A DNA stretch of 64,000 nt from Heteronotia binoei (lineage: Eukaryota). Of this stretch, positions 1,557 to 64,000 are shown in pieces. The stretch covers positions 180,544,001 to 180,608,000 of the forward strand of contig NC_083243.1 of NCBI RefSeq assembly GCF_032191835.1. The letters are read 5' to 3'. A model generated the notes under the pieces. That model searched no databases and was not told the DNA's origin. It was given only the letters and a program-made list of their open reading frames with translations. The position numbers and the translations under genes are program-made. Every line of letters begins with the position of its first letter. Position 1 is the first letter of the stretch.

Positions 1557-1639
1557 AAATGAGTACTGCAGGAAATGAATTTATTTGAAAGTCTCCCACC
1601 ACCTTCTCCGGACGAACACATTATTTGTATTGACATAAA

Positions 1640-2100: not shown

Positions 2101-3823
2101 CATAATCTCATGTATTAATAGCTATCTTTCCTACCACGTTCAAATGCCATCAGTGATCAAATGAGCATCATTGATTCCTAAAGCACAGCGCGTCACTGAC
2201 TGAGCCATATATATTCAACTAAGCACAAAGCTAGTGAAAGCACAAATCCCCAACATTGCAAAGGTTTCAGTATCGTTGGTGGCACTAGCTGCCTCTTAAC
2301 CTGTGATTCATTTCTTGATTGAATCAACAGTACATTTCCAAGCCTGATGGCGAAATCCTAAATAAATGCTTCTTGACTTTAAGATAGCGAACCGCAATTG
2401 AAAAAGGAATCAAAGTTGTAAAGCGAGGCAGACTGCTCATGGGAGGCACTTTTTTAATTGACAAAGCAAGAAAGCAAAAAGATTGTAATTTCTCTTCTGG
2501 TTAGATGTCAGGAACATTGGAGGAAATGTATGCATCGGTTATTACCGATATTTTTGGAAGCTCAGATAGCCAACCATGTGTCTAGCGTGCCGGTCTTCGA
2601 AATGGGGTTTAAATTAGAGGTCAAGTCAGTATATTTGCCTACTTTGGCTGCTGATTGTGGATTTTGAATCTTCCACATAACTGAAAATTGGTCTTGACTT
2701 GTTGAATGCAAATTATAGCTGCCTATGGAGAAATATTGTGGTCTGAGTGGTCCATTGTATAGCCAGAATGGTTTTCATCATGCACTCAGTATATGGGGGG
2801 AAATGTCAGAAGAGTTGCAATATATTACGTCATCTGTATCTCATCTGTTGGCGCCACAAAAGCCTAATTCTGTGTGCCATCAAACCAAATCAATTAGTAT
2901 AGTATCTTATTGCAGGCAACAGTCTTCTCATAAAAGAAATGTCATCTCTAAACAAGAAGCGGTGGCAAAGAAGGGTGTTTGAAATGGCTTCTGCTAGAAA
3001 TGTGTCAGAGCTTCATCCTAGTCAACTTTTTACGTTCCTGAATCATAGATGACAGAGGCTGAGTTGCAAAGGCATCGACCTCCTTAAATATCTCCACTTT
3101 CATCTTATTTCCCCCTAGGCATCTGTCTCAATAGGTTCAGTGTCTCCACTCACCATCTTCTTTAGTCCATTTCTGACTGTTATGAACAGAATAGAGGACA
3201 GCCTCTTTTTTCGGTTCTCGAAGGGAAATATTGGTTTTCCTGAAACAAACTTTGGAGAGGCTTGAGTATTAGAGATATTCCTTTTCTTCCCCTTCCAGTC
3301 TTTTAGTATTCCTCCTCACATTGGTTTCCTTTATGCCTTATCCTTGAAATGAATGGCACAACATTCTTGAACAATGATGGAGAACCACCATCTTAAGATA
3401 ACTTGGACTAAATTGTCCTTTTTATAATATCTGTTATACCTGACTTTCAAAGCTTTGTCTCGATGCCATAGCTTCACTTGATATTTCTACAATGCACTGA
3501 ACTAATTTGGGGCTCTCATTCAGCTTCCCTGTGGAATATTTCCCTACAACTTACTAAAGCCAGCCGTGTTAGATTCACAGAGTCATGGTTGCTCTGGCAG
3601 AGGAGACAACTTTCAGGAGCAAGAGCATGATAAGGAGGAAAGCGGTTGAGTTATACAGGATCGGAACCAGCGCAAGGAACCTGTGAGGATCCCTACTCCC
3701 CACAGCAGGAATGTTGATTCATGGGGTTTCAGGGCCTGTGCGGAGTAAAAGCCATGTGGGTTCAAAGCAGGATTGCCATCTCCTGGGGCTTGAGATCTCT
3801 CTGAATTACAGTTGATCTCCAGG

Positions 3824-4546
3824 TAGGGCTGCCAAGTCTGTGTTGGAAAACACCTGGAGTAGGGTTGCCAAGTCCAATTCAAGAAATATCTGGGGACTTT
3901 GGGGGTGGAGCCAGGAGATATTAGGAGTGGAGCCAAGATCAAGGCTGTGACAAGCATCATTGAACTCCAAAGGGAGTTCTGGCCATCACATTTAAAGGGA
4001 CGGCACACCTTTTCAATGCCTTCCTTCCATAGGAAATAATGAAGGATAGGGGGTACCTTCTTTTGGGGCTCATAGAATTGGACCCCCTGGTCCAATCTTT
4101 TTGAAACTTGGAGGGTATTTTGGGGAGAGGCACTGGATGCTATACTGAAAATTTGGTGCCTCTACCCAAAAAAACAGCCCCCCCCCAGAGCCTCAGATAC
4201 CCACGGATCAATTCTCCATGATTTTCTATGGGAATAAATCTCCATAGGGAATAACAGAGTTCCCAGCAGACATTTCCCTCCCCCCCCCCGCTTTCTGATG
4301 ACCCTGAAGCGGGGGGGGGCTCCAAACCGGGGGATCCCCTGCCCCCACCTGGGGATTGGCAACCCTAACCTGGAGACTTTGGGGGGGGGGGTGGAGCCAG
4401 GAGAGTGTGGGGTTTGGGGAGGGGAAGGGCCATAGAGTCCACCCTTCAAAGCAGCCATTTTCTCCAGGGAAGCTGATCTTCGTCAGCTGGAGATCACTTG
4501 TAAAAGTGAGAGATCTCCAGGCACCACTGGGAGGCTGACAACCCTG
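3824..4546. mobile_element. hAT MITE family B hosting the family A copy; itself inside another family B copy (about 3768-4697)
   Basis: Ends TAGGGCTGCCAA / GACAACCCTG; TSD TCTCCAG(G/A). Confidence 0.75.
3860..4367. mobile_element. hAT (Blackjack-like) MITE, family A
   Basis: TIR TAGGGTTGCCAA; perfect 8-bp TSD ACCTGGAG. Confidence 0.9.
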
Positions 4547-5469
4547 TCTCCAGATTATATAGACCAGTTCCTTTGGAGTAAATGGCTACTTTGGAGGAAG
4601 CATTCTGCCCTGCTGAGGTTCCTCCCCAAACCCTGCTCTCCCCAGGTTCCATCCCAAAATCTCCAGGGATTTCCCAACACAGAGTTAACAGGTGTAGTCT
4701 GGAGGTTGCAATGAGGAGGAGGCAAAATCATTCTCTTTCTCTTCCATCAGTAGATGTCACCTTACAGAAGAAACACCTGACAATTTTACACCTTTCCCCC
4801 CCTCCTCATTGCAGCCTTATTACTCCACATGCTTCCCTCGACATGGGGAAATATTTAGAAACTGTTGCTAAGGAAAGGGGGGGGGGTGCTATGCCTTCCA
4901 TTGACAGACTTCAGGATCCAACCCATAATTTCCATAGATGCTTATAATGCCCTATTCACCCATTTTCCTCCATGAGGTTTTTACATACACGTAGCAATTT
5001 TGTTCTCATTACCTCACAGAACTGCATTCGCAAAGGTTTTGCTACAGATTGCTGCCTAAAAGTTTAGTGTAGTTTTGTGTGGGGGGATTGGTTCAAATTG
5101 TGGAAATCACCTAGTTGACTGCTGAGGATAAACTACAATGTGATAAAGGGAAAAGGTCCTAGACTGAGACTTCAAGAACTTCTGGACTGTTGGTGGCAGT
5201 GTGTTGAAGAAGGCTACAACAGCTGCCCTGGAAAATGGGGGAAGATGACCAAACGGGTTAAAGCTTCATTAACCACGAAACTGTGTCACTTTTCTGTCAT
5301 GCTCCCAAATCAAGAATGAAATAACAAGTGCTCTTGATGGGCGGAAAAACTACTCTTTGATGCTATTAAGGTTTTTTTCTCTAAAATAATAAAAAGGGAA
5401 AAAAGAATCTGATATAACATTGTGAGATTTACTTTGTGCTTATTTATTTCCAAACCAGGTTGCTTTTAA

Positions 5470-5805
5470 CGATTCATAAACGCCTGGGGCTCTTTATCTC
5501 GGAGAAACGTCGACTGCGGGGTGACATGATAGAGGTTTACAAGATAATGCATGGGATGGAGAAAGTAGAGAAAGAAGCGCTTTTCTCCCTTTCTCACAAT
5601 ACAAGAACTCGTGGGCATTTGATGAAGTTGCTGAGCAGTCGGGTTAAAACAGATAAAAGGAGGTACTTCTTCACCCAAAGGGTGATTAACATGTGGAATT
5701 CACTGCAACAGGAGGTGGTGGCAGCTACAAGCATAGCCAGCTTCAAGAGAAGATTGGATAAAAATATGGAGCTGAGGTCCATCAGTGGCTATTAGCCACA
5801 GTGTG

Positions 5806-5844
<39 letters not shown>

Positions 5845-5932
5845 ATAATTTTTTTGGGCCACCGTATGACACAGAGTGTTGGACTGGATGGGCCATTGGC
5901 CTGATCCAACATGGCTTCTCTTATGTTCTTAT
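5470..5932 (+). mobile_element. CR1 LINE 3' fragment with an internal (TA)n(TG)n microsatellite
   Basis: LGLF..EKRRLRGDMIEVYKIMHG, TRTRGH..KL, FFTQRVIN.WNSL, FKR.LDK; 3' tail CCTGATCCAACATGGCTTCTCTTATGTTCTTAT. Confidence 0.95.
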
Positions 5933-6400
5933 AAAGAACCAGATATGGTTGACTTGCTTGCCAATTTTCAGTGAAGGAAATGTACAGGGAGGTGTGTTGC
6001 CCATGTTCAATTGACCAGGAGAGATATTGTGAATCACTATCATATTGGACAAAAGGGCAGAGATCACATGGCTGGCATGCACTGGACATTTCTCCAACAT
6101 GCACCTATGTCCACATGAAGCTGATTACTGATCAATCTATCCCAGTATTTTCTGCTTCACTTAGTCTTGCTTAGCTCTGTACCCAAATTCCTTTAAGTTA
6201 CCAAGGGTTTAAGCAAGACTTTCTGAATGCAATACAGACCAATGTTCTATCACTCTTTCCCTAGTCCTGACCATCCTTTAAACACTATCAAAAGATAGAG
6301 GGAGCATCACTCAGTGACAGAGCACCTTTGCATACATCTTTGCAACTATCTCCAGTTTTTTTTTTAAGGATTAGGTAGTAGGTGATGTAAAAGATCATGG

Positions 6401-6948
6401 TAGGGTTGCCAATCCCCAGGTCCCAGCGGGGGTTCTCCCACTTTCCCAGGCTCCTTCCCATTCCCAGGGAGCTGCCCCCACAGCCACCATGTGCCTTTCC
6501 ACCTCTGGAGGCTTCAGACTCCACTTGGAAAGGCTTCCTCTTGGGATAGTGTGTCTGTGTCTTTAAGGCTGAATGGGGGCGGGGTGAACAGGAAGAACAA
6601 CATGGCTACTCCCAATGGCTGTGAAAGCAGCCCAGACCCCATTGGTTGCACAATTTTTTGAGGTAGAGGCACCTAATTTTCAGCATAGCTTCTGATGACT
6701 CTCCACAAAATGCTCTCCAGGTTTCAAAAATATTGGACAAGGGGGTCCAATTCTATGAGCCCCGAAAGAACGCGCCCCTATCCTTCATTATTTCTAATGT
6801 AGGGAAGGCATTTAAAAGGTGTGCGGTTTCTTTAAATGCGATGGCCAGAACTCCCTTTGGATTTTAACTTTGGTTATGGCTCCACCTCCAATGTATCCTG
6901 GCTCCACCCCCAAATTCAATATTTATTGAATTGGACTTGGCAACCCTG
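6401..6948. mobile_element. hAT MITE family A (variant left arm)
   Basis: TIR TAGGGTTGCCAA; TSD GATC(A/T)TGG. Confidence 0.85.
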
Positions 6949-6984
6949 GATCTTGGAGAGTTACTGCCAGATAAAGGAGGCAAT

Positions 6985-7141
6985 TGTCATGGGTGCTGGG
7001 GACCCTGCAGAGGAAGACGAGTCTTCCGAGGAAACTGTACCCCTGCCACCTGCACCAGTACCCCTGCCTCCTGCTGAAGAAGATCCCAGCCCCCCTGCCT
7101 CGCCCTCTCGGGTGGCTCGTGTGCATGACCGCCTCCGTCAG
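6985..7141 (+). repeat. Truncated copy of the same LTR family as 18830-19426
   Basis: Aligns to the first about 157 bp of the solo LTR with the reading frame preserved. Confidence 0.9.
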
Positions 7142-7324
7142 ATGGTGATCCACGCTCCGATTACATCCAGTCAGTGCATGTGTTTAAAAAGTGCTGGTAG
7201 TCTTGCATAAGATTACACTGATTTCCATTAGTTTCTCTCCTCAGTACTTGGGAGAGCCCCCCCCCCCCAGTGCTGGTACTCAGTACCAGTGCATAACACA
7301 CACACCCAAAGCCCTGCATCCACG

Positions 7325-8250
7325 TGAGCGTACTAAAATGCATTTTACATGGGGCTGCCTATGAAAATGGTCCAGGAACTTCAGCCTGTCCAAAATTCAG
7401 CAGCCAGGCTATTGTCTGGGTGAGATACAAGGATCGTATTTCCCCAGCACGACTTACTTATTTCTGGACATGATTCAAAGTGTTGGATTTTACCTTTAAA
7501 GCCTTAAATGACTTTGAGCCAAGGTGCTTGAAGGATTTCCTCCTCTCATATTGTGTAGCCCATCAGTTAAGATCTGGGGAGGGACGGTGGCTCAGTGGTA
7601 GAGCATCTGCTTGGGAAGCAGAAGGTCCCAGGTTCAATCCCCGGCATCTCCAAAAAAGGGTCCAGGCAAAAAGGTATGAAAAACCTCAGCTTGAGACCCT
7701 GGAGAGCAGGGGAGGGACGGTGGCTCAGTGGCAGAGCATCTGCTTGGGAAGCAGAAGGTCCCAGGTTCAATCCCTGGCATCTCCAAAAAAGGGTCCAGGC
7801 AAATAGGTGTGGAAAACCTCAGCTTGAGACCCTGGAGAGCCGCTGCCAGTCTGAGAAGACAATACTGACTTTGATGGACCAAGGGTCTGAGTCAGTATAA
7901 GGCAGCTTCATATGTTCATATGATCTGCCTCACAAGCCCTGTTCTCTGTGCCCCCACCTTCCATGTAAGTTGGGTGGCAAATGGAGACAGGGCTTTTTCA
8001 GTACTGGCACCTTGCTTGTGAAATGCCCTTCGCCTTGTGGCTTGCCTGGTGCCTACATTGCTTTCTTTTAGGTGCCAGATCGAAATGTTGCTGTTCACCC
8101 AAGCTTTTAATGAAAGGGTTTATTTGAACATTTATTTTAATCTGAACCCTTATTTTATGCTGTTTGTGGTCTGTGGTATGGTCTATGTTTTTACATTGAG
8201 CTCAGTCCCCCCCTCCCCCGCCATAATGTTGATTTGTTATGATCATCTTT
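7325..8250 (+). mobile_element. Old L2 3' fragment interrupted by a SINE
   Basis: YMGLP.K..Q.LQ.VQN.AARL, FKV..FTFKALN...P..L.D.L; continues after 7927. Confidence 0.7.
7577..7921 (+). mobile_element. tRNA-derived SINE with CR1-like tail (Squam2-like), partial dimer
   Basis: A box TGGCTCAGTGG, B box GGTTCAATCC; two heads (7577 and 7709); TSD GATCTG (7571-7576 and 7922-7927). Confidence 0.88.
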
Positions 8251-8811
8251 TAATGTTGATGACAATCAGGGGTGGAATTCTAGCAGGAGCTCCTTTGCAT
8301 ATTAGGCCACACGCCCCTGATGTAGCCAATCCTCCAAGAGCTTACAAGGCTCTTTTTTGTAAGTACATAAATTCTTGCACCCAGAGATGGTGCTTCATCC
8401 ATGACACAGCGTTTCCAAGGAAGTTTTCTTTGGAGAAAAGAGCACCATAGACTTCTGTTTGCTTATATACCTAAGGACTGGACAGGAGTTACAAGGAAGC
8501 AGATTTAAGTATACAGCAGGAACTACTATTTAAAAAAACTGGAGTAAAAGAGTAATGTATAGAAAAGGATTTTATGTCCATTAAGACCATCTCCTTCCAT
8601 ATGTTCCTGTGCCCAGCTACAGCCATCTGCTGGCTATCTTGCTACTTAGAGTAACCCACAAACACTGACCAGAACCCAGGCCTTTTCTATCATGGTTCCC
8701 TGAAAGAGGTGGTGTCCCCACCACCCACCTTGGAGATCTTCAGGAGGTGCTGCAAGATACCAAAAAGGAATGAAGAGTGACTATCCCCTAATTTCTAGCC
8801 CATCGGTTAGA

Positions 8812-9008
8812 CAGGATTGCCAACCCCCAGGTGGGCCTGGGAGATCTCCCAGTATTACAACTAATCTCCTGACAATGGAGATCAGTTCCCCTGCAGAAAA
8901 TGGCTGCTGTGGAGGGTGGACTCTATGGCGTTATACCCCACTGAGGTCCCTTCCCAGGTTCCAACCCAAAAATTTCCAGGAACTTCCCAATCTGTAGTTG
9001 GCAGCCTG
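8812..9008. mobile_element. hAT MITE family B
   Basis: CAGGATTGCCAA...TTGGCAGCCTG; similar to 17247-17446. Confidence 0.75.
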
Positions 9009-9067
9009 CCTTTGGGTCATAAGAGATGGCAGCAGTATATCGCAGAAATGTCATATGGTGCCATTTA

Positions 9068-9662
9068 AAGAAGAAGAAGATCTTGGATTTATATCCCGCC
9101 CTCCACTCCGAAGAGTCTCAGAGCGGCTTACAATCTCCTTTACCTTCCTCCCTCACAACAGACACCCTGTGAGGTGGGTGGGGCTGGAGAGGGCTCTCAC
9201 AGCAGCTGCCCTTTCAAGGACAGAGGCTCAGAGCGGCCTACAATCTCCTTTCCCTTCCTCCCCCACAACAGACACCCTGTGAGGTGGGTGGGGCTGGAGA
9301 GGGCTCTCACAGCAGCTGCCCTTTCAAGGACAGAGTCTCAGAGCGGCCTACAATCTCCTTTCCCTTCCTCCCCCACAACAGACACCCTGTGAGGTGGGTG
9401 GGGCTGAGAGGGCTCTCACAGCAACTGCCCTTTCAAGGACAAGCTCTGCCAGAGCTATGGCTGACCCAAGGCCATGCTAGCAGGTGAAAGTGGAGGAGTG
9501 GGGAATCAAACCCGGTTCTCCCAGATAAGAGTCCGCCCTTTCAAGGACAACCTCTGCCAGAGCTATGGCTGACCCAAGGCCATTCCAACAGGTGCAAGTG
9601 GAGGAGTGGGAAATCAAACCCGGTACTCCCAGATACGAGTCTGCACACTTAACCACTACACT
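9068..9662 (-). mobile_element. Squam3-type (tRNA-CORE-L2 tail) SINE with internal tandem duplications
   Basis: tRNA-like head, CCTCACAGGGTG CORE motif, L2-like tail GAGCCGCTCTGAGAC...GGGCGGGATATAAAT, (CTT)n end; body unit x3 and head unit x2. Confidence 0.85.
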
Positions 9663-10171
9663 AAACTACACCTAGGCCCCTCTTGATAAGCATCTTTCTT
9701 CAACAAGAAATGCAATTCATTCAGTCAAAGCATTCCATAGACCACATAGATAGTTTACATTAAATCGTGTTACCAGCAGCACTAATAGCTAAACATAGTA
9801 CTGAAGAAGAGACAGTTTATTATTCAAGATATTAGTGTTAGGCACTACTAAAAACTGACCCTCACCTATCCTGTTTCTTTCAAGACTGTTTTTCATGCTT
9901 TTTGATATAGATGCAAGATTCAAGAGAAGTTAATGTGGGACGATATTTAAATAGAAGAAATAATTTTATTTTATTTTTAGGGAATCCAGCTTGTAAACAA
10001 TGTTAAATCTGAATATTTTTGTTTCTTTACCAAAAACCTCCACGAAATGAACAGTTGCTTTTTTTTTTTTAAAGGGAACTTGCAAAACGTTATATTTTCA
10101 ATTTAATAACAAGAAAATATTAAAAAGGGCCTTAAGGCTTCATGAATGTGAGAATGGGGTATACAAACTAT

Positions 10172-10457
10172 CAGCGTTTTCACACTGACCTTACTCCTGA
10201 GCGACGTCCCCCTTCACCGCGCAGCGTCTGCGCGGATTTCGCACCAATTGCTCCGCAGAACCCGGAAGAGCCGCAAAGTCCCACGGCTTTTGCGTCGCAA
10301 ATGTAAACCACCAAAAACCAGTTTACATTTGTGACGCAAAAGCCGCGGGACTTTGCGGCTCTTCCGGGTTCTGCGGAGCAATTGGTGCGAAATCCGCGCA
10401 GGCGCTGCGCGGTGAAGAGGGACGTCGCTCCGGAGTAAGGTCAGTGCAAAAATGCCC
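10172..10457. mobile_element. Foldback MITE, probably PIF/Harbinger type
   Basis: Near-perfect inverted repeat over its whole length; 3-bp TSD TAT. Confidence 0.78.
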
Positions 10458-11626
10458 TATATTTCTGTTCCAGCAACACCCTAGAATAAAAATCCCTTTT
10501 CAAATGAAGATGTGTAAGTCCCACAAGAATAGCAGAAAATTCAGACACTTGTGGGTATTAATTTCTGCAAAACTCTTGCCAGCTTCTGCTGCCTGTGATT
10601 CAGCTTGCTAGAAAGAAAGTCATGAAAGATTCGTGCGGAAGTGAAAAATGCCTCACAAAATTGGAAGAAAAAGCTGTATTTCATTTTGTGATCAGCCCTG
10701 GTGTGATTGGCACAAGAGTACCTTGAATGGCAGCCTCACTCACTAATTAGGTATATTTGAATTGGTCCTTATAGCTTTAGTTGATGGATCTACCAATTAG
10801 ACCAGTTAAAGCTTTCAGCCCCTGGTTTCTCTTACTGCTTTATTGCATCGTTTTGTTCAAAAATCCTTTTTTATGTTTGCCCTAAATATAGAGTATTTTT
10901 TATTTCTACTATTGAAGGTCAGAGGTTTTTGTGTGACTATCCTCTTTTGTGGAGCCTAAATGTAGGAGTGTCTCCACGTCATTTCTGTTAGGCATGCACA
11001 GCCCCGTTGTAGCTCTCCCTCGGACCTTCTCCAGACTGCCAAGGGCCAAGGAACTAATGAATGAAACGGGTGGCATTTGTTAAAGCGTGATTGTTTCCAT
11101 TCATTTTGTTACTCTTGCTCAATGAAGGAAATTAAGGGGGCTGGGGGAGAGGGATAGCTGTTCTGAAAGTGCATCCCTACCAGAGAGGATGAGCATAATC
11201 TATTTTTATATTACAATATGTGATCATTTTAAATACAATTTACAGTTTATTTTATTGTTACATTTTATCCAGCATGGTATTGTCATTAGAGTGTTGGAGG
11301 ATGGGAGGCTCACTCTGCTATGAAGCTTGCTGGAGACCTTGGGCCTGTTTTTCTCTCTCAGTTTAATTTAACTCACAGGATCGCTATGAGGACAGCATGG
11401 AAGAAGGAAATGCCACCCTGAACTCCTCCTTCAATCTACTACGTACCTACCTACATACCTACCTACCTACTTATCTATCGAGAGATAATTGTACCTGCAA
11501 CTGACAACAAAATGTTGATGGATCAACTGACAACAAAATGTGTGCCAATCAGAATAAACAGCCATTACCAAATAAAGTAACAGCAAAATGTAGTTCCTGG
11601 TATCAATCTACTCTATATAGATCTTC

Positions 11627-12056
11627 TAAGGTTGCCAATCCCCAGTTGGGGGCAGGAGAGTCCCTGATTTGGAGGCTGTGCCCTGCTTCATGGTTATCAG
11701 AAAGTGGTGTGGGGGAATGGTCTCTAGGCACTCCATCACAGCTGTGGAGAATTGATCCATGGGTATCTGGAGTTTGAGGGGGGCTGTTTTTTGGAAGTAG
11801 AGGCACCAAATTTTCAGCATCGCATTTGATGCCTCTCCTAAAAAAAGTGCCCCAAGTTTTAAAAAGATTGGTACAATTCTATGAGCCCCTCAATAAAGTA
11901 TCCTCCTCCTCCATTATTTCCAATGGGAGGAAGACATTTAAAAGGAATGTGATGGCCAGAATTCCCTTTGGAGTTCAATCGTACTTTTCACAACCTCACT
12001 CCTGGCTCCACTCCCAGAAGCCCCAGATATTTCCTAAGTCAGACCTGGGAACCCTT
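11627..12056. mobile_element. hAT MITE family A
   Basis: Degenerate TIRs; TSD (A/G)GATCTTC. Confidence 0.8.
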
Positions 12057-12364
12057 GGATCTTCTCAAAAGACATGGTTTCTATAAGGTGGTAAGCAGAA
12101 TGCAGTGCAATAGTTGGTAGCTCTCCAACCACACCCCCATCAAGGAGACCCAGAGAATTAGTGGGGACTAAATAAGCTCCTTTCCAAGTCCTTACAAACC
12201 TCTGTGGGGCCTCTCTTGTTAACCTCAGCAGGCAGAGAAGACTTTACAGAATATATCCTTCAGACATGCAAGACCCAGGTCGTGTAAGGCTTTATAAATA
12301 TTTTCCAGTAACTTGCACACGGCCCTGGAACTTAACTGGAGCCAGAATTTTTTTTTTCCTGCAG

Positions 12365-12800
12365 AAAAAATAAGTTTATTTAATAATTCAGTCATTTACA
12401 ATTCTCCACAAATTTTGTAGCGGATATTCACAGGTTATGCAAGCGTCCAAGCATTTATGCAGTCGTTACAAATAAAATTACAACAATGTTCAGAACGAAA
12501 GGAAACTTATTAAACATATTCGGATACAGATTGTGTCACTAATTGAAAACGATTCTTCTCACAATGCGAATAACGTCTGACAGACAGGCTTCTTTAAAAT
12601 AAAACCAAACTAGATAAAAGCACATCATGTTGAGGTATGTCTAACTTTATGTTATCCATAGGAGCCTTAGTTATAAAAGGAAACCACTTCTTGGAGAGAA
12701 AGGAATTACTTCTGTCACTCTGGGTAGGATTCAAGTCAAAAGCCAGAATAGAGCAGCCAGAATGGAGCATAACATTGTCCTCTCTGATCCAGTGAAAGAA
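12365..12800 (-). mobile_element. Probable L1 3' fragment
   Basis: ...FLSKKWFPFI resembles the L1 ORF2 C-terminus, followed by an AT-rich UTR, AATAAA and an A-tail; inserted in an L2 relic (about 12100-13130). Confidence 0.35.
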
Positions 12801-13494
12801 GGTGCCCATATCCATTATTTCCTATGGAAGGAAGGAATTGAAAAGGTGTGCTGTCCCTTTCAATGTGATGGCCAGAACTCCCTTTGGAGTTCAATTATGC
12901 TTGTGACAGCCTTGATCTTGGCTCCACCCCTAATGTCTCCTTGCTCCACCCCCAAAGTCTCCTGGCTCCACCCTCAAAGTCCCCAGATATTTCTTGAATT
13001 GGACTTGGCAACCCTGTCCACAGCACTCTGAACTGGTTGCAAATCTGGAGACCAGTTCAATGGTTCTCCAATATGGACATGTCTGACTACCCTGGACAAC
13101 TGTGAGAATCAGTTCTGTGCTCTTATAGACGTCCCAAAACTTCTAATAGCAAACCAACTGATTTTTTCCCAAATATATCAGATGTATTTCAATCCTTGCA
13201 ATTTACACCCACAATTGGCTAATATTGGGTACAAGGGCCAACTTATAAAGCCTTGAGCAGGCAAAAACAATTACTATTAATTAACGCAACGACATTTTGT
13301 TTTATTGATATGTTTCCTGAAATTCCTGCTCCTTCATCCTTTGCCCCAGCGTCCCCTTCCTGCTTCCCCTCCTCCTCCAAACTAAGCTGAAGATGGGAGG
13401 GGGACAATGTTGTTTAGGCAACAAGACTGAGCTGAGAAATGGGTATCAAGAGTCCACAAGAAGAGGGGAAAGATCAGCTTGCCTCTCTCCCCTG

Positions 13495-17446: not shown

Positions 17447-18829
17447 GGAAGCACTCACACAGAGGGAGACAGCAATTGTGTTGCTTCTGCTTGTAAAATC
17501 CAAGGCTCTTAGCTAAGAAGTGATTTATAACCCCACAGTTCAGTGGTTAGATCCAGGGGCCATAAACTGGGCCTTTTGTTCTTTAGGGGCCTGTTTGAGC
17601 TCAGTACTAGGGCATCAGTTTTGTATAGATAAAATCCCAGGCTCTTTCCCAAGGAACTTTGGGTACAGGTATATGCCTGAGTGTACCAATAGCCTGACAT
17701 AGTATGAAGCAGCTCATAATATCTTTGTTATGACTGGGATGATTGATCAACAGATAACTGAAGACAGCGGTGTTGCACATTAAGTTTATCAAGGGATAAT
17801 TATAATTATCACATAACTGATTTACCATGTGAAATTGAGTTCACCCTTAATTACACTTTGGGAAGCTTGAACCCATTCCTATTAATTTCCGAAGCGGAGA
17901 AAAAAAAAATCACTGCTGTGTAACTTCCTCTTATCACTTTTGTGGATTGTATCTTTGTTTTGAATACAACCATAGACCATGTTTATTCAGAGCGGAAATC
18001 CACTGAAACAAACTCTATGATGCGGTAAAGCTCAACACAAGAGGGTTTCTTTGGAACAGGGGCCCTCCGTCTGACAGAGCTTTGAGCTTTTAACCCTTGC
18101 GAAGAACTGTGTGGCAACACTTATTCACCACATGTTTTTGTCATGCTGACCCACACGCAGGACATTCCCCCACAGGTCTGTTGTTCCAGCTCGCCTTCTT
18201 ATCAGTTTTCCTTCCAATGTAGCCATTCCTACATTCTCCTGAGTGTACCAGTATCAACAAGTAGGAAAGGAGCTCAGCTATTGAGAGCAGACAGTTACAA
18301 CAGGGTCTGTCTCTGCAGAGGAATAATTATATAAGAAATAAGTTGGAGAGACAAAAGACGACGGCGATGGAGCAGAATGCTGGACACGCTGCAAGTTTAT
18401 TTTTTCTTCTTTACTGAGACTAATAGTTTATAACTTCGCAACCTCCCTGCTATTTATCTCTGTCCCTCGGCTGTGTTGTTTATAATTTATTTATTATTGT
18501 TTGAACTCTTGCTGAAAGACTGTTTTATTGTTATGGGCTGTTATCTTGCTGAGTTCCAAGAGTAGTGAAATCACTTGTAAATTACTCCCAGTCTTAGCAG
18601 TGGTAAACTGCCACGTGACTTAGAGGATAGAAACATACAGCCAGCACAAAAACAAAGACTGGAGAGTATTTTATTTGTAGCAAGAAGGATGCTTTTAATA
18701 TATCTACTTCAAATCGCTACTCCCCGCCCCCCCCCCCAGCAGGTGTGGACACTGAGTGTGTGAGAATGGAAGATTTAGTGAGAGATGCTGACGCTCTGTC
18801 AGATTTGGTAAATGAAGAGTCCATCACTT

Positions 18830-19426
18830 TGTCATGGGTGCTGGGGGCCCTGCAGAAGAAGCCGAGCCTGCAGAAGAAACTGTGCCCCTGCCACCTGCAC
18901 CAGGGCCCCTGCCTCCTGCTGGAGAAGATCCAAGCCCCCCTGCCTCGCCCTCTCGGGTGGCTCGTGTGCGTGACCGCCTTCGTCAGGACCTCAGGGATCG
19001 GAGGAGGGCGGCACGCTCACGAGCAAGACGCTCCCTGAGCCCTGAGTTTTGAAAGGATTCTGGCCCTTCTAGGAGTGAGGATGCTTGAGTCTCAGCAGGA
19101 TCCTGGCTGCCTTTCTGAGCCAGCAATTAGCCCAAATGGGCAACAGACAGCAGAGGGCTATATAGCTGTGGGCTTTGGGAGGAGGCTTCGTGGAAGCAAC
19201 TAGTCACTTATCTGACGTTCTAGCATCCACTTTGGCTTTTGACTTTGGCTTCTGGACCCCCTGACTTTGGCTTTGACTTCTGGACCCCCTGACTTCGGCT
19301 TCTGAACCTCTGACCTGCGATACCTGGACGGTGATTTGGTTTTGGCGCTTTGGACCCTCCTTGCTACCCAGCTACAGCCCTTGGACTGCCTCTGGACTTC
19401 GCCTGGCCTGGCCCCAGCCTGTGACA
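18830..19426 (+). repeat. Solo LTR of a Gypsy family related to the chromovirus; contains a 72-aa ORF (18834-19052)
   Basis: TGTCATG...TGTGACA with 5-bp TSD CACTT (18825-18829 and 19427-19431). Confidence 0.92.
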
Positions 19427-19817
19427 CACTTCTACAGTGAGTAAATACTCTGAACTTACTGCCCTAACAGTAGCTCGTGTCTTTGAGTTGCTGAATGTTC
19501 TAAAAAACTCCACTGATAAGCTGGCACAGGCAGTTTCAAGACTGTCTGATGAGACCCAACTCAAGAACTTCCCTACCTCAGCTCAGGGCGGTGACCTCCA
19601 AGGATCTGTGAGTTCTGTTACACTGGCAGCAGATTGCTCTTTACCACAGACAAAGCCACCAAAGGATAAGGGCAAAGAGCGGCTGCAGAGTTCCCAGTGC
19701 TTGACTTTACGACTGCATAGAGTATGTCTCTTAATATGCCATCAGAGGCTATTTGCAGTCCTGGAGATCTAAATGGTAGGCTAGCAGACACCTGAGGAGT
19801 GTGCTCAAAGGTGTAAG

Positions 19818-55200: not shown

Positions 55201-55213
55201 TTGGGAGGGAAAT

Positions 55214-57112: not shown

Positions 57113-59250
57113 TCAAAGGGACTGCTTTGAAGCGGGAATCGTCTTCTTTGTGGTCTGAACACGAGGCCGTTGATGGAAAGGTTGTTTGGTTGGTGGAGCT
57201 TTGCGCTTCCAGTAGTCGGCTTGTTTCGGTGAGCGGGGATGTTTATAGTAGGATGGTTTCCAAACTCTCTGCCGATTGGGTTGAGCTTGTTGTTGACTGA
57301 CTCCCAATCTCCTAGCCCTCTTTCTGCTATCATCGTCAGTCGTTGCATTGAAGAGACCCTGATTGTCAAAGGGCAGGTCCTCGATCTTAAATTTAATGTC
57401 TGGTTTCAGTGAGGAGGATCGAAGCCAGGTATGGTGATGCAAGGCGATGGATGTGGCCATGGTCCTGGATGAGCAAGCCACAGCATGACAGACTGTGTTA
57501 ATCTGTTGTTTGCTAACCCGGGAAATTTCTTGTAGGAGTTGCGATGCTTGCTTCTGCACAGAATCAGGTAGAGAAGAAACCAGCGTAGTTTGCTGTGAAG
57601 TTAAATTAAAGGTATAAGCTGAAAAGTATGCTAGATAATTATGAATTTTAGAGGAAGCAGTAGTGAGGGAATAAATCTTTCTTCCTAGGATGTCGAGTTT
57701 TTTCCCTTCCTTCTCAGGTGGAACCGGATGTCGCGTCTGTTTGGGCTTCAATAAAGAGTGCACAATCATGGAGTTGGGTGCAGGATGATTGAACAAGAAT
57801 TTAGAATCCGGTGCACAGATTTTATATAATGATTCGACCCTCTTAGATGCAGGAGGAACCGATGCAGGCTTATCCCAAGCCTCTTTGAGGCCCTCGAGGT
57901 GAACAGGAAGCACTGGGAGGAAAGATCCAGCAGGTAAGTTAGCGTGGACTAGGTCATGGACCACATCTGATACTCTAGGCAAATCAGTAGTGAGCTTGAT
58001 ATTTAGAATGTTAGCCATGTTGGTTAGCAGGTCTAAATAGGCCTTGGAGCCCTCTGATGGTGAAAGATCTGCCAGTTTAGTGATGTCAGAAATAGGTGAT
58101 ACAGGTGCGGATCCTACAGATTGAGAAGAATAGGAGTGTTCAGAGTCAGAATCTTCAGATGCGTCCATAGATGTACTTGGATGGTCGTGTGAAGGTTTGG
58201 TTGATATCAATATAGCCTTTTCCAGATGGGTAGGTTGGCCAGGTTGTTCTCTCTGTTGTTTAGATGGAGCGGACTGGGCAGCAGAAGTTGAAGCCACCAG
58301 TGATCGTGGTTTCGAATCCTGGCTGTCATGCCTGTGTCGATGTGGAGATAAACCCTAGTGGTATCGGGGGTAGTAGATTTCCTCACGGTACCAAGGCTAG
58401 TAGGCTTCCTCACGGTACCGAGGTTGATGGAGCTTGTAGAAAGGTGATCGAGAAATCCTATAGTGCTGCCAATACCGACGTGGAGGCGAAGGTGATCCAG
58501 ATCACGATGGACTATAATAATAGTGATCCGTGTGTCGGCTTGGAGATCATGGGTCAGCATAGACTTGGGTAGAAAAATCTCTATACATTGGTGACCGGTG
58601 CAGCGGGGATCGTAAACGACATTGATCATGAGATGAGTTGAAGGCTCTTGATATAGTGGAGAGATGGCCGAGTCCTTAAAGGTGCGGGGCGCCGACACTT
58701 CTCGGAATGAATGGAGTCCAAGGAGATTAGCTCGCTGTGCTAGAGGTCGAAGTGGTAGGTCGAGAGATTCAGCGGCAAGGATCTCATCTGGTAGTGATTT
58801 GTGGACAGAAGGGGATCGTGACTGGATGCAGATGACCTTGTCGGTTATGACATTGGTGGAAGCCAAGAGTTCTGCTGGAATATTAGGTGCCGATGATACC
58901 GCAGCCGTGGCTGCCGCCATCACCAAGTGCGAGGTCGATGCGGAAGTCGATGCCATGGTATGGTCAGAGGGTCCCAAATCCAAAGACTTATGGTCGGTCT
59001 TCGCTTTGGATTTTGATGCTATCAAGTCCGATCAATGTTTGGAAGACGATTCCGGTCTGTGTTTTTCCGTGGAGTCGTCAGATTTCTTAGAGTGCTTTTC
59101 AGACTTATGCTTGCTGGGTGTCAGGACCCAGACCTGCAGACAACGACGGGCAGCTTCTGTTGCCCTGGCAATCGGCCAGGACGCTGGCTGTCGGCTGGGG
59201 TGTTTCCAAAGGCAGCACGAACGTTATCTTTACAGTCCTTAATTGGTCTG
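57113..59250 (-). pseudogene. DIRS ORF1 (Gag with LAP2alpha-like domain), frameshifted
   Basis: LPVHLEGLKEAWDKP, YKI...LFNHPAPNSMIV, PPEKEGKKLDILGRKIY, DLPFDNQGLF resemble the DIRS Gag/LAP2alpha-domain family; preceded by a Ser/Thr-rich low-complexity segment. Confidence 0.75.
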
Positions 59251-59754
59251 TGCCATAAATCAGGCCAGCCGAAGGGAGTAGCGAAGCGCGGAGTCTCAGG
59301 AATGCAGAAGGGTCGTCAACCAGGGAAAGCAAGCCGAATGTATACAAAGTACTTAGCCAAAGCAGAGTCCAGTTTCCAGTCCAAAGTCAAGCCGGGTCGG
59401 GAAGCAGACAGGTTCGTTCAGCAGGCAAGGGGGTGCAGGGCGCGGTCACGTCGGAGGGTGATCATTCAACTACATTGTCAGAACTCTGGGCTCAGATCTC
59501 TCCTAGCACGCCTGCGTGCTTCTCTACGCCTGTCTCTGAACTCCAGCCGTCTCCTCTCGCGTAGCCGTTCTGCAGGTGGTGATGATTCTGGAGGCGATGA
59601 GCTAGTGCCTGGTGTGGCCTGATCGGTTTCAGGTGGCCCCTGCTGCTGGCTTGCTCCTTCAGGACTTACGTCCGACGTTGGTAGAGGCATCTGCACAGCA
59701 GGGGCGGGGTCAGAAGCAGGCACCTGCTCTGAGTCAGCAGGGGCAGGCATGACA
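59251..59754 (-). repeat. 3' LTR of the chromovirus, with an in-frame 90-aa ORF (59478-59750)
   Basis: Begins TGTCATG directly after the PPT; pol reads through it to LSPEF-stop. Confidence 0.85.
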
Positions 59755-62700
59755 CTATCCCCCCCCTCAGGCCCCCCCTCATCCAAGCCGCCTGGCTTAT
59801 CTGGGTAGGCCTCGTGGAATTGCTGGAGCAGGTCAGGGGTATGCAGGTGGGTAGCCGGTTCCCAGGAACGGTCCTCGGGAGGGTAGCCTTCCCAGTCCAC
59901 CAGGTACTGGAGCTGACCTCGGTGCAGCCGGGAGTCCAGGATCTGACGGACCTCGAACTCTTCCTCATCGTCCACCAAAACCGGTGGTGGAGGCGGTGGT
60001 GGAGTGTCCCTGTTTGGGTCTGGTGCTGCCGCTGGTTGGAGGAGGGAACGATGGAACACTGGGTGGATCCGGAGGTGGGCGGGGAGGCGTAGGCGGAACG
60101 CCACGGGGTTGATTTGCGCCTCTATGGGGAATGGACCGATGAAACGGGCGGTGAGCTTGGCGGATCGGCCAGGAGTCCGGAGGTACCGGGTCGAGAGCCA
60201 GACGGAATCCCCGACCTTGAGGGGGGCTCCGTCCTGGCGATGTCGATCCGCGGCCAGTTTGTATGCGTCTTTGGCGCGTTGGAGCTGGGTGCGCAAGAGG
60301 TCGTGGAGCGCATGGAGTTCCTCGATCCGGTTGTCGGCCGCGGGGACGTTGGCGGATGGGCCGAGCGGAGGGAAGAACCGGGGGTGCAGTCCGTAGTTGG
60401 CCGCAAACGGTGTGGTCTGCGTGGAGCTGTGCAGCGCGTTATTATATGCAAACAGGGGCAGCAGAGAGGCCCAATTGTCCTGTTGATAGCTGGTATAACA
60501 GCGCAAGTACTGCTCCAGGGTGGCGTTGGTCCGCTCTGTCTGCCCGTCGGTCTGGGGATGGTAGGCGGAAGACAAGTGAAGCTCCGTCCCCAAACCGTGC
60601 TGGAAGGCTTGCCAAAAGCGGGAGGTAAATTGCGGGCCCCGATCTGAGATGACCTGCGTGGGTAACCCGTGCAGGCGGAAGACGTGGTTTAGGTAGAGCT
60701 GGGCAGTTTCCGGTCCTGACGGTACTTTGGCGCAGGGGACGAAGTGGGCCATTTTGGTGAACAGGTCCACCACAACGAAAATGCAGGTGTGGCCCTGGGA
60801 TCGTGGTAGGTCCACGATAAAGTCCATGGACACCACATCCCAGGGACCGGCGGGAGTAGGCAGGGGCTGTAGGAGACCGGAGGGCTTGGCCGGTACGTTT
60901 TTGGCTCGGCGGCAGACCTCGCAAGAAGCCACGTATCGACTGACGTCTGCTCGGACGCGGGGCCACCAGAAGTCTCGGGTCAATAGATGAGCGGTCTTGT
61001 TTTGCCCGAAGTGGCCAGCCGGGGGTGCATCGTGGGCAAGACGGAGGATGCGGGAACGGAGAGGCCCGGGAGGGACATACAACTGCTCCCGATGGTAGAG
61101 CAGCCCATCCCGGGTGGATAGTTCACTGGCAGGGTCTTGCTGCGGTTCCTGCAGGTGTTTCTGAGCCCAAGGGTCGGTGTCTTGACTGGCCTGTATCTCT
61201 GCCACCAAGGCGGGTGCGGTCAGAGTGGCAGCAAAGACCGAAGGTGGCAGGATGCTAGCCTTGGGGGCTTCGGTGGTACTAGAGGCGTTATAGTCCGGCC
61301 GGCGGGACAGAGCGTCGGCTTTTTGGTTCTGGGAGTGCGGGACGTAGGCAATGGTAAAGTTGAACCGTGAAAAGAACAGGGACCACCGGATCTGCCGCTG
61401 GTTCAGCCGGCGAGTGGTCTGCAAGTGCTCCAAGTTTCGGTGATCTGTGAAGACTTGGACCGGATGTCGGGCTCCCTCAAGGTGGTGACGCCACACCTCA
61501 AAAGCCACCTTGATGGCCAAGAGCTCTCTCTCCCATATGGTGTAGTTGCGCTCGGCGGCAGAGAGCTGCCGGGAGTAGTAGGCGCAGGGTTGCCACGGCT
61601 GGCTGGGATCGTCCCGCTGGGAGAGCACGGCTCCGAGGGCCACATTGGAGGCGTCTGCTTCCACCATGAAGGGCAAGCGGGGGTCAGGGTACCGCAGGAG
61701 GGGACTTGAGGAAAAGCTATGCTTGAGTTGGCGGAAAGCCTGGTCGGCTTCTGGGGTCCACTGGAAGGGCTCCTTAGGTCGAAGGAGTCTAGTCAAGGGC
61801 TTGGTCAGGTCGGCGTAGCCCGCGATGAATTGCCTGTAATAGTTGGCGAAGCCCAGGAGGCGCTGGACGTCCTTCCGATTTTGAGGGGCCTGCCACTGCA
61901 GGATGGCGTCGACCTTCCGCGGATCCATCTGGGTTCCTTGGGGGGAAATGATGTGCCCCAGGAACTCGACGGACTGAAGGTGGAAGGCGCATTTCTCTAG
62001 CTTGGCATACAGGTGATGGGCCCGGAGTCGTTGTAGCACCTGGCGGACGTGTTGGACGTGCTCCTGCTCGGAAGTGGAGTAGACCAAAATGTCATCTAGG
62101 TAAATGATCAGGAACCGGTCTAGCAGGTCGCGGAACACGTCGTTCATGAACCGTTGGAACACGGCAGGGGCATTGGTGAGCCCAAAGGGCATAACCAGGT
62201 GTTCGTACTGGCCATACCTGGTGCCAAAGGCGGTCTTCCACTCATCTCCGGCTTTGATACGAACCAAGTTGTAGGCCCCTCGAAGGTCGAGCTTGGTGTA
62301 GATCGTGGCCCCCTTGATACGGTCGAGGAGCTCCGGGATCAGCGGCAGCGGGTAGCGGTTCCGAATGGTAATCTTGTTGAGGGCTCGGTAGTCGTTGCAC
62401 AGCCGTAAGTCCCCGGTTTTTTTCTTGACGAACAGGACCGGTGAGGACAAGGGCGAGGTAGAGGGTCGAATGAACCCTCGGGCCAAGTTCTTTTCCAGGT
62501 ACTCCCGGAGGGCAGCTAGTTCCGGGTCCGCCATGGGGTAAAGGCGGCCTGCTGGTAGCGGGGCGCCGGGTATCAGGTCGATGGCGCAATCGTAGGGCCG
62601 ATGTGGGGGAAGCTGGTCTGCTTCCTTCTCGTTGAAGACGTCCGCGAACTCCTGATAGGGAGCTGGTAGAGTGGTGGCAGCCCCCAGGAGGCTGGTGGCG

Positions 62701-63221
62701 AGTGGGGAACCGGGTTGGTTGGCAGGCGGCACCGGAGCCGAGTCGGGTGGTAGTGTGGAACAGGGCGCGAGGGCACTCGAAAAGCTCAGTTCGCGTTGCA
62801 CCCAGTCCACATGAGGGTTGTGGGCCTCAAGCCAGGACAGGCCCAGGATGACCGGGAAACGGGGCATGCGGGCCAAGTCAAAGGTCTGTTTCCCCTGGTG
62901 CTGCTGGACCCATAAAACGAGTGGTAGAGTCTCGTGGCAGACGGGTCCAGAGCGCAGCAGACGACCATCCACGGCCTCAACCAGTGTAGGAGTCTTCTTT
63001 TCCCGGACGGGGACGCCATGCTCCTTGGCAAAGTGATTGTCCATGTAGCAGCAGGCAGCCCCTGAGTCCAACATGGCATGGACGAAGATCCACCGGTCGT
63101 CAGGAAGCCGCAGACGGATCGGGACCAGGAACGGGGTGGGTGGTGGGTGGACGGAGCGGGAGGACCTCGAGGAGTGCCCCAGGTCAGAAGGTCCAACTAG
63201 ACCTGGGGCTGGCCTTTTACC
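59478..63221 (-). CDS. pol: Pol (protease, RT, RNase H, integrase, chromodomain, LTR-encoded tail), in the -1 frame relative to gag
   Basis: Protease LDSGA; RT LCNDYRALN, KLDLRGAYNL, MPFGLTNAPAVFQ, YLDDILVYS; RH EADAS, ELLAI, TDHRNL, ADALSR; IN H-X6-H..C-X2-C, SMDFIVDLP, SDRGPQF, GQTER; chromodomain FEVRQILDSR...YLVDWEGYPPEDRSWEP. The ORF track starts at 63497, but the functional start is inferred at the frameshift site. Confidence 0.95.
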   Translation of the reverse strand, partial: GKRPAPGLVGPSDLGHSSRSSRSVHPPPTPFLVPIRLRLPDDRWIFVHAMLDSGAACCYMDNHFAKEHGVPVREKKTPTLVEAVDGRLLRSGPVCHETLPLVLWVQQHQGKQTFDLARMPRFPVILGLSWLEAHNPHVDWVQRELSFSSALAPCSTLPPDSAPVPPANQPGSPLATSLLGAATTLPAPYQEFADVFNEKEADQLPPHRPYDCAIDLIPGAPLPAGRLYPMADPELAALREYLEKNLARGFIRPSTSPLSSPVLFVKKKTGDLRLCNDYRALNKITIRNRYPLPLIPELLDRIKGATIYTKLDLRGAYNLVRIKAGDEWKTAFGTRYGQYEHLVMPFGLTNAPAVFQRFMNDVFRDLLDRFLIIYLDDILVYSTSEQEHVQHVRQVLQRLRAHHLYAKLEKCAFHLQSVEFLGHIISPQGTQMDPRKVDAILQWQAPQNRKDVQRLLGFANYYRQFIAGYADLTKPLTRLLRPKEPFQWTPEADQAFRQLKHSFSSSPLLRYPDPRLPFMVEADASNVALGAVLSQRDDPSQPWQPCAYYSRQLSAAERNYTIWERELLAIKVAFEVWRHHLEGARHPVQVFTDHRNLEHLQTTRRLNQRQIRWSLFFSRFNFTIAYVPHSQNQKADALSRRPDYNASSTTEAPKASILPPSVFAATLTAPALVAEIQASQDTDPWAQKHLQEPQQDPASELSTRDGLLYHREQLYVPPGPLRSRILRLAHDAPPAGHFGQNKTAHLLTRDFWWPRVRADVSRYVASCEVCRRAKNVPAKPSGLLQPLPTPAGPWDVVSMDFIVDLPRSQGHTCIFVVVDLFTKMAHFVPCAKVPSGPETAQLYLNHVFRLHGLPTQVISDRGPQFTSRFWQAFQHGLGTELHLSSAYHPQTDGQTERTNATLEQYLRCYTSYQQDNWASLLPLFAYNNALHSSTQTTPFAANYGLHPRFFPPLGPSANVPAADNRIEELHALHDLLRTQLQRAKDAYKLAADRHRQDGAPLKVGDSVWLSTRYLRTPGRSAKLTARFIGPFPIEAQINPVAFRLRLPAHLRIHPVFHRSLLQPAAAPDPNRDTPPPPPPPVLVDDEEEFEVRQILDSRLHRGQLQYLVDWEGYPPEDRSWEPATHLHTPDLLQQFHEAYPDKPGGLDEGGPEGGDSVMPAPADSEQVPASDPAPAVQMPLPTSDVSPEGASQQQGPPETDQATPGTSSSPPESSPPAERLRERRRLEFRDRRREARRRARRDLSPEF
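63162..63221 (-). promoter_or_regulatory. -1 programmed ribosomal frameshift signal (heptamer plus H-type pseudoknot)
   Basis: On the minus strand: G_GTA_AAA, 5-nt spacer GGCCA, stem 1 GCCCCAGGTC/GACCTGGGGC (10 bp perfect), and loop GGACCT able to pair with downstream AGGTCC. It lies at the gag/pol overlap, as in PEG10. Confidence 0.75.
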
Positions 63222-64000
63222 GAGGCGGCAGAACTTGTGGGGCGCTTTGATTTGGCCGGACATAAGCTTGCGAAATGCCCGTCTCCACCACAATACAGGC
63301 ACAGGTGGTTGGTGCGCCGTCGGTTCTTCTCCTCGGGAGTCAGGCGAGGGCGGGCGACGCCCAGCTGCATGGGTTCTGCAGCCGGCGGAAGAGCTGGGGT
63401 GCCTGAAGCAGGAGCCGCCGTGGGGACCCTGGGTGGGGTGTGGCCCCTCTTCTGCCTCTGGCGTCGACCCTGCAGCCGCCCATCGATGCGTAGGCACAGC
63501 AGGATCAGATCTTGGAGGGCGGCTGGGCGGTCACTGCGTGCTAGTTCATCCAGGACAGCATCAGAGAGACCTTCAGTATATTGGTCCACCAAGGCAGCTT
63601 CGTTCCAGGCCAGGTCTTGGGCCAATAGCTGGAACTCTGTGGTATAATGGGACACAGAGTTTTGGCCTTGGCGCAAGGCCCGTATCTTACGATTAGCCGT
63701 CTCAGCACGCACGGGGTTGGCATAAGCAGCCGTGAAGTGGGCCTTGAACCGGGTGTAGTCTGCCAGCAGTGGTGAGGGCTCTAGCAGCAGAGGAGTGGCC
63801 CATTTGGCCGCTGGCCCTTTAAGCAGGCTCAAGATAAAGCAGACCTTAGTCTTGTCCGTAGGGAAGTCGCCCTGCCTTATCTCCATGTAGAGTTCACACT
63901 GGGCGAGGAAGGCAGGGAACTCCTCCAGGCTTCCAGCAAATTTCTCAGGAACGCTCACCGGGCAGCGAGAGCGGGGAACGGCGTGGGCAGCCAAGGCCAC
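63197..64000 (-). CDS. gag: Gag (Retrotrans_gag/PEG10-like capsid plus CCHC zinc knuckle), N-terminus outside window
   Basis: PEKFAG..EEFPAFLAQCELY, KVCFILSLLKGPAAKWATP, LRQG..SV..YTTEFQ.LA..L.WNE.AL..QY..GLSD, knuckle CLYCGGDGHFASLC. Confidence 0.93.
   Translation of the reverse strand: MALAAHAVPRSRCPVSVPEKFAGSLEEFPAFLAQCELYMEIRQGDFPTDKTKVCFILSLLKGPAAKWATPLLLEPSPLLADYTRFKAHFTAAYANPVRAETANRKIRALRQGQNSVSHYTTEFQLLAQDLAWNEAALVDQYTEGLSDAVLDELARSDRPAALQDLILLCLRIDGRLQGRRQRQKRGHTPPRVPTAAPASGTPALPPAAEPMQLGVARPRLTPEEKNRRRTNHLCLYCGGDGHFASLCPAKSKRPTSSAASVKGQPQV

Follow-up and report, generated by a model that had tools for sequence, protein, structure and literature searches.

An arginine-rich peptide encoded in the LTRs of gecko Gypsy elements is most probably the C-terminal tail of a chromovirus integrase

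Two LTR families in the window, that is, the whole 64,000-nucleotide stretch of Heteronotia binoei DNA analysed here, encode an arginine-rich peptide ending in LSPEF, and we consider it highly probable that this peptide is the C-terminal tail of a vertebrate chromovirus integrase, with Pol reading through the polypurine tract (PPT) into the 3' LTR. An LTR-overlapping integrase tail under protein-level selection was one of two readings offered in the preliminary description of this DNA, and this reading is supported by three gecko and several teleost families, which share both the frame through the PPT and the terminal motif. According to the proposed working, Pol would be translated as one ORF from genomic RNA, past the chromodomain and through the PPT, the G-runs of which would be read as glycines, into U3 of the 3' LTR; because reverse transcription copies U3 to both ends of the element, a silent coding copy would then reside in every 5' LTR and every solo LTR. 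The apparent mini-gene of the LTR would thereby be explained, solo LTRs of these families holding a dead copy of the integrase end and no gene of their own, and a vertebrate chromovirus clade ranging from teleosts to geckos would encode the last 13 to ~110 integrase residues inside U3.

The LTR peptides and the end of Pol

The coordinates of the features in the window are collected in Table 1. Translation of the two LTR ORFs gave the peptides of the preliminary description, namely, MGAGGP...LSPEF* in the solo LTR and MPAPAD...LSPEF* in the chromovirus LTR, and the fragment starting at position 6985, said there to keep the same frame, indeed does so.

Table 1 Features of the window discussed in the text (minus-strand chromovirus and its surroundings first, then the solo LTR family)
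Feature	Position	Strand	Basis and remarks
Chromovirus Pol ORF, intact, 1339 aa	59478..63497	-	ORF list and Pfam
Chromovirus gag; ORF continues past the window end	63197..64000	-	Pfam DUF4939, Retrotrans_gag, Ty3_capsid
PPT, bipartite G-run, within the coding frame	59755..59780	-	Read directly; translated ...GGPEGGDS
Chromovirus 3' LTR, 636 bp, 59754 down to 59119	59119..59754	-	Start from PPT and TGTCATG; end coordinate inferred
LTR-encoded integrase tail, 90 residues and stop	59478..59750	-	Translation, MPAPAD...RRDLSPEF*
Long ORFs downstream of the chromovirus	58207-59025, 57113-58297, 56455-57369, 55971-56516, 55257-55763, 54207-54674	-	
Solo LTR, 597 bp	18830..19426	+	TGTCA...TGACA ends; read directly
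Solo-LTR ORF, 72 codons and stop	18834-19052	+	Translation, MGAGGP...RRSLSPEF*
Last 29 codons of the solo-LTR ORF: arginine-rich helix (predicted), then R-S-L-S-P-E-F	18963..19049	+	Codon comparison
TATA-like box of the solo LTR, TATATAG	19159..19165	+	Read directly; putative promoter role
Truncated second copy of the solo-LTR family	6985..7141	+	blastn, 91% DNA identity; frame intact for 51 codons, then break-off

The 1339-aa Pol of the minus-strand element showed Pfam matches to RVT_1, RT_RNaseH, Integrase_H2C2, rve, SH3_Tf2-1 (residues 1096–1155), and Chromo (residues 1181–1229, E = 3.9e-13), and this domain order, RT, RNase H, integrase, and chromodomain, fits that of a chromovirus (Ty3/gypsy with a chromodomain). 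Pol and the LTR ORF constitute one reading frame, which runs without a stop from the chromodomain through the PPT into the 3' LTR, as the preliminary description had stated in placing the LTR ORF as the in-frame end of integrase after the chromodomain. The tail within the LTR consists, by translation and structure prediction, of an acidic/proline-rich disordered linker, an arginine-rich helix, and the terminal DLSPEF. The end of this 3' LTR was set at ...GGGTCCTGACA, which is similar to the ends of related LTRs, and the 5' LTR lies beyond the end of the window.

The solo LTR begins with TGTCATG at position 18830, finishes with TGTGACA, and is flanked on both sides by a perfect 5-bp target-site duplication, CACTT (18825–18829 and 19427–19431). 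Its ORF stops ~107 nt before the TATA-like box and is on this ground assigned to U3. The helix assigned to its last 29 codons in Table 1 is taken from the prediction on the homologous segment of the minus-strand chromovirus family.

Gene models in H. binoei and Gekko kuhli were picked up in a protein search for which the integrase C-terminus served as query, and their loci were then compared. The H. binoei locus (L003) contains, at 39000–44515, a full-length element of the family of the window's solo LTR, with open reading frames for gag (296 aa) and pol (1171 aa), a nearly identical LTR pair (579/581), and both LTRs 88.6% identical to the solo LTR over the full length. Its Pol ends with ...GGPGGGDSVMGAGDPSEE...RRSLSPEF*, and the solo-LTR peptide is 90% identical to this in-frame end; thus, the solo-LTR peptide corresponds to the in-frame end of that family's integrase, and the comparison identifies the ORF in the solo LTR as a relic copy of the integrase C-terminal tail. 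The Gekko kuhli locus (L004) represents a third family, with identical LTRs (709/709) and a Pol ending with ...GGDSVMPAPAD...RARRSLSPDY*. Several of the elements are very young, with LTR pairs 99.7–100% identical.

In both the H. binoei and the Gekko kuhli elements, the PPT abuts the 3' LTR start, which was set by comparing the LTR pair, and the three gecko families share the junction pattern G-run, CCTG(A/G), G-run, GATAG/TGTCATG (the slash marking the LTR start), identical from the second G-run on. The integrase C-terminal regions of the three families are ~62–64% identical in protein, and this similarity, together with the near-identical PPT/LTR junction, indicates that the LTR families come from sister lineages; between them, only the first few dozen bases and the ORF end still align. 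The two LTR families of the window, which had been called unrelated-looking, are therefore sister chromovirus lineages with ~62% amino acid identity in the integrase C-terminus. The same arrangement, with the PPT and the LTR start inside a stop-free ORF running into the 3' LTR, was found in the window element and in all four of the compared loci, two from geckos and two from teleosts (L001–L004), the LTR starts of which were mapped by 5'/3' LTR comparison.

The other reading in the preliminary description was a separate accessory protein of the mouse mammary tumor virus (MMTV) Sag or HIV Nef type with a Rev/Tat-like arginine-rich motif, made from a spliced or subgenomic RNA. Such a protein would start from the ATG at LTR base 5, and read-through into solo LTRs would be a further conceivable source of it. 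An ATG is indeed present at LTR base 5 in both families of the window; a Met occurs there in the three gecko families and in a copy from Rhineura floridana, with G at -3, and in young elements neither LTR copy interrupts the ORF. We nevertheless regard a separate protein as very unlikely, since the ORF is fused in frame to Pol, stop-free, in every family examined. The ATG lies within GATAG/TGTCATG, which is identical at the DNA level in the three gecko families and is situated beside the PPT and at the LTR terminus; these are cis-acting sites, so that the conservation of the adjoining ATG is explained by cis requirements, in agreement with a caveat already raised that the ATG may simply be part of the terminal repeat. 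Moreover, other residues occupy the position of the ATG in relatives that keep the tail all the same, namely, Thr in frog tails and the majority of fish tails, Arg in the Oryzias tail, and Val in Vipera. The TATA-like box also comes after the ORF, and the promoter of a solo or 5' LTR would therefore be unable to transcribe it, contrary to the suggestion that every solo LTR is a potential mini-gene. The MMTV sag and HIV/SIV nef genes likewise overlap U3 of the 3' LTR with coding sequence; they are separate ORFs with their own start codon, expressed from spliced or LTR-initiated mRNA, whereas the ORF described here continues pol and its start codon is unconserved.

RNA reads bear on the accessory protein only weakly, for reasons of depth: three raw-read runs and one contig set contained no splice joint. 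The raw reads on the window element amounted to 13–57 per run, with 92–99% likeness and on both strands, and showed neither joints nor clustered starts, a coverage too sparse for locating a transcription start or dismissing a spliced RNA, with the 5' leader located outside the window. In metatranscriptome contigs of one run (X1), the summed word depth peaked at 306 over positions 59584–59754, versus 34–130 over most of pol; the peak spans the first 170 bases of the LTR, i.e., the part coding for the linker, and its probable cause is the copy number of the LTR, not a separate transcript.

Purifying selection on the tail at the protein level

Over the last 29 codons, the peptides of the solo LTR and the chromovirus LTR have 20 identical residues, 15 of which use different codons, and our codon comparison thus reproduced the counts reported earlier. 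With the stop codon included, identity by codon position was 21/25/9 of 30, and the NG86 method gave a dN of 0.28 over the 29 codons with dS saturated and not estimable; the constraint inside U3 is accordingly exerted at the protein level, as had been claimed. Both peptides are ~45% Arg, a residue with six codons, and two arginine-rich, low-complexity ORFs in GC-rich LTRs might come to resemble each other by chance, an explanation to which we assign a practically negligible probability. In 200,000 composition-preserving shuffles, the number of identities averaged 6.9 and never exceeded 16, as against the 20 observed, and hence Arg-richness does not account for the match; the same ending was, moreover, found again in independent families and species.

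When the last 32 codons were compared between pairs of gecko families, 16–20 residues were identical, with second-position identity of 23–24/32, third-position identity of 8–15/32 (8–10 in most pairs), dN of 0.33–0.45, and dS of at least 1.5 or saturated. Within one family, the window's solo LTR was compared with the H. binoei full-length element: dN/dS over the whole ORF was 0.32, the 16 differences were split 2/5/9 by codon position, and divergence was 7.3% in the ORF versus 13.8% in the remaining LTR.

Constraint could in principle act on the DNA of a cis-regulatory element in U3, the ORF being incidental. The three gecko families do have the string CTGAGCCC(T/A)GA in common, and blastn between the LTR families recovers only this island. 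However, the third codon positions are near random in most of the gecko pairs, against the second positions that are largely retained, and fish use other codons for the same residues: geckos encode the Ser of the motif with AGC, fish with TCA, and the stop codons comprise TGA and TAG, the latter in fish. These differing Ser and stop codons indicate a constraint on protein, not on DNA. In addition, the motif lies anywhere from 13 to 112 codons from the LTR start, and a cis-regulatory origin of the conservation is in our judgment extremely unlikely. Collectively, these codon comparisons show purifying selection on the tail, acting on its basic helix and most of all on its last heptad. Because the first part of U3 is coding, the LTR promoters of this clade are restricted in how they can evolve.

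A 195-aa ORF on the plus strand (59035–59622) lies antisense to the chromovirus LTR tail. In this frame, which has the same codon register, 18/29 residues are common to both LTR families, and a stop is present in the solo LTR. We rejected it as a gene because such an ORF is the expected mirror image of a conserved arginine-rich coding strand.

The terminal heptad, its candidate partners, and known systems

Teleost Pol relatives picked up with the integrase C-terminus of the window element (Cirrhinus, Labeo, Oryzias, and Prochilodus) end with REPSPEY, REPSPEF, REPSPDF, or RSPSPEF, and the motif common to geckos and teleosts is R-x-x-S-P-[E/D]-[F/Y]-COOH. In Cirrhinus (L001), the junction reads ...GGGDS/VTPSQQREPSPEY* with 13 codons within the LTR, and in Prochilodus (L002) ...GGGD/VTLPG...VRSPSPEF* with ~41 codons. 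The frame is constant in every family: the G-run PPT encodes glycines, LTR base 1 falls on the third position of a codon, and bases 2–4 encode Val. Apart from the ~41 codons in Prochilodus, the LTR-encoded segment measures about 13–21 codons in fish, as against 72–112 in geckos, and by this comparison it has grown from fish to geckos as the linker that separates the terminal motif from the junction became longer.

Among 120 listed relatives of the Oryzias melastigma Pol C-terminal region, 67 end exactly in SPx[F/Y], and in a further 30 the motif lies somewhere in the final 200 residues; the three gecko families and these 67 fish relatives thus all finish with S-x-x-[F/Y]. The 67 represent 36 distinct endings, in all of which Ser-Pro at -3/-2 is given by construction of the filter. 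Arg is found at -6 in 36/36, Glu or Asp at -1 in 35/36, and the last residue is Tyr in 21 and Phe in 15, while position -5 is occupied by Glu, Ser, or Thr in 30 and by Ala in 6. An exhaustive search of representatives yielded 3 endings in SP[E/D][F/Y] among 150 listed, with fragments and chimeric gene models predominating, and was of use chiefly in bringing up the gecko, Rhineura, Vipera, and frog (Ranitomeya) relatives. The last heptad alone is universal, the arginine-rich helix being missing from the LTR-encoded part in fish, which have a basic PRGRPRR stretch upstream of the PPT.

In fish integrases (P0012, P0013, P0166, P0192–P0202, and L001), the region that separates the chromodomain from the PPT includes a conserved segment, ...RPAPRPRGRPRR..., which has RGRP as its core and is similar to an AT-hook. 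It is missing from the gecko families, which have the LTR-encoded arginine-rich helix instead.

An AlphaFold2 model was built for the last 260 residues of the window integrase with a 12-sequence alignment. The SH3-like and chromo domains were folded, residues 161–228 (linker) had no confident structure (pLDDT < 50), a helix at residues 229–256 (pLDDT 84–88) coincided with the arginine-rich segment, and the last four residues, SPEF, were extended. The tail would accordingly be composed of a variable acidic/Pro/Ser-rich disordered linker of ~10 to ~80 residues depending on the family, followed in the gecko families by an arginine-rich α-helix of ~28 residues, and finally by the almost invariant heptad. 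We infer that the basic helix may serve nuclear import and/or nucleic-acid or chromatin binding; the heptad may act as a short linear docking motif tying the integrase, or the intasome, to a host nuclear factor. The Ser of the motif, with Arg at -3 and Pro at +1, is probably phospho-regulated, and a host protein would read the free carboxylate, the aromatic last residue, and the Ser-Pro of the heptad. The heptad offers a compact, testable handle on how these elements engage the host nuclear machinery. Where repeat libraries and annotation pipelines divide elements at the PPT into LTR and interior, the C-terminus of integrase is cut off together with this most conserved short motif.

Short, disordered, conserved peptides at or near the integrase C-terminus are known from other elements: the integrase tail of MLV binds BET proteins, the targeting domain of Ty5 integrase binds Sir4, with its targeting peptide being phospho-regulated, and the C-terminus of Ty1 integrase binds the Pol III subunit AC40. 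Those peptides dock host chromatin factors, and a docking tail of the chromovirus integrase would resemble them in this; they have no sequence similarity to the present tail and are not LTR-encoded.

Several classes of C-terminal or linear motifs were rejected by their binding rules. A PDZ class I–III ligand is incompatible with Pro at -2; 14-3-3 mode III requires one or two residues after the phosphoserine, where the heptad has three; and the terminal residues are not SKL-like as in PTS1. A cyclin RxL docking site is present in geckos (R-S-L and R-D-L) and absent in fish (R-E-P).

The best specific candidate partner, offered as a lead from analogy, is a tandem-BRCT reader. Abraxas ends with ...Y-S404-R-pS406-P-T-F409-COOH, the F409 of which is accommodated in the BRCA1 BRCT pocket with its carboxylate bonded to R1699 (PMC4747905), and the C-terminal SQ[E/D]-hydrophobic-COOH of H2AX is read by the tandem BRCT of MDC1 (PMC11143218). 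The heptad resembles Abraxas in Ser at -3, Pro at -2, and an aromatic last residue with a free carboxylate, and often has S/T/D/E at -5 in the place of Abraxas S404; it resembles H2AX (pS-Q-E-Y-COOH) in Ser at -3, E/D at -1, and an aromatic end. The gecko S-L-S-P-E-F and D-L-S-P-E-F as well as many fish E-P-S-P-E-Y endings fit the pattern S/D/E at -5, S at -3, P at -2, and F/Y at 0, a likeness of four to six residues only. The endings differ, on the other hand, from the BRCA1 pSPxF consensus in having Tyr as the last residue in some tails, and from the H2AX SQ site in Pro at +1 of the Ser; furthermore, Ala at -5 in 6 of the 36 distinct fish tails means that the analogy with doubly phosphorylated Abraxas is not general. 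It is conceivable, although we think it improbable, that the phosphorylated heptad mimics host C-terminal phospho-marks and brings to the intasome a DNA-damage protein with tandem BRCT domains, namely, BRCA1, MDC1, or one of their relatives. If so, the recruited protein might aid repair of the gapped integration intermediate or steer integration to damaged or repair-active chromatin, and the tail would supplement the chromodomain as a device for targeting or for coupling to repair, retained for more than 400 million years.

With regard to precedent, the gag-pol ORF of plant CRM-clade chromoviruses and of the Beta vulgaris element Bingo extends into the 3' LTR (PMC3605345), and the general architecture is therefore not new. 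As in those Ty3/gypsy chromoviruses, in which the LTR-encoded integrase end specifies the target (PMC3605345), the C-terminal end of integrase is encoded here past the PPT, inside the 3' LTR. The likeness to CRM is one of layout: the chromodomain-like CR motif of CRM lies in the LTR, whereas the vertebrate elements have a canonical chromodomain upstream of the PPT and only the post-chromodomain tail is LTR-encoded. The statement in the preliminary description that no account of such an arrangement was known consequently does not hold for the ORF entering the 3' LTR, and it does hold, as far as our search went, for the vertebrate terminal motif. In the literature searched, which left most subscription journals outside its scope and thus provides weak evidence of novelty, we found no description of the LTR overlap or of the terminal motif in vertebrate chromoviruses, and the conserved C-terminal motif appears to be undescribed. 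A word-index protein search with the last 65 residues gave no match at E <= 10, a result uninformative on novelty for a short, low-complexity query against a 5.8-billion-sequence database; an ESM Atlas feature search with the 90-aa tail gave no usable match, and a PDB sequence search with the last 40 residues gave no match at E <= 10.

Related copies and neighbouring retroelements

The Gekko kuhli element (1453–13160 of its locus) has 100% identical LTRs with starts 11 kb apart, and its interior contains an extra 1253-aa ORF (6697–10458) between two open pol pieces. Its appearance is that of an insertion nested very recently, or else of an unusual composite.

Some annotated gene models also contain chromovirus sequence. 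The Rhineura floridana model P0034 (L005, 6070–6843), annotated as "chromo domain-containing protein cec-1-like", is a chromovirus integrase C-terminal part with the junction GDSVM, an acidic linker, and a basic end. It finishes with ...VSLRPKR*, compared with ...RSLSPEF* in geckos, so that the stop is at the same position and the motif is lost; a decayed copy has here probably been given a host-gene annotation. The single copies from Rhineura and Vipera both have the layout DSV[M/V], acidic linker, and basic end but lack the terminal SPx[FY], and they may be decayed or poor gene models. Two H. binoei gene models named Sec31B and EFCAB6 (P0015 and P0030) include chromovirus Pol pieces, residues 717–1419 of P0030 being 73–75% identical to the window's Pol and residues 574–608 of P0015 being 86% identical to its chromodomain; both are probably chimeric.

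Within the window, the region directly downstream of the chromovirus 3' LTR (54200–59100, minus strand) is occupied by the series of long minus-strand ORFs listed in Table 1, with a partial RVT_1 as the single Pfam match among them (E = 7e-6). A further retroelement, unusual or decayed, may be present here, the chromovirus having been inserted within it or next to it. Farther along the same strand (43399–45675), a 758-aa ORF with a full RVT_1 (E = 4e-34) and without integrase is probably a non-LTR (LINE-type) reverse transcriptase.
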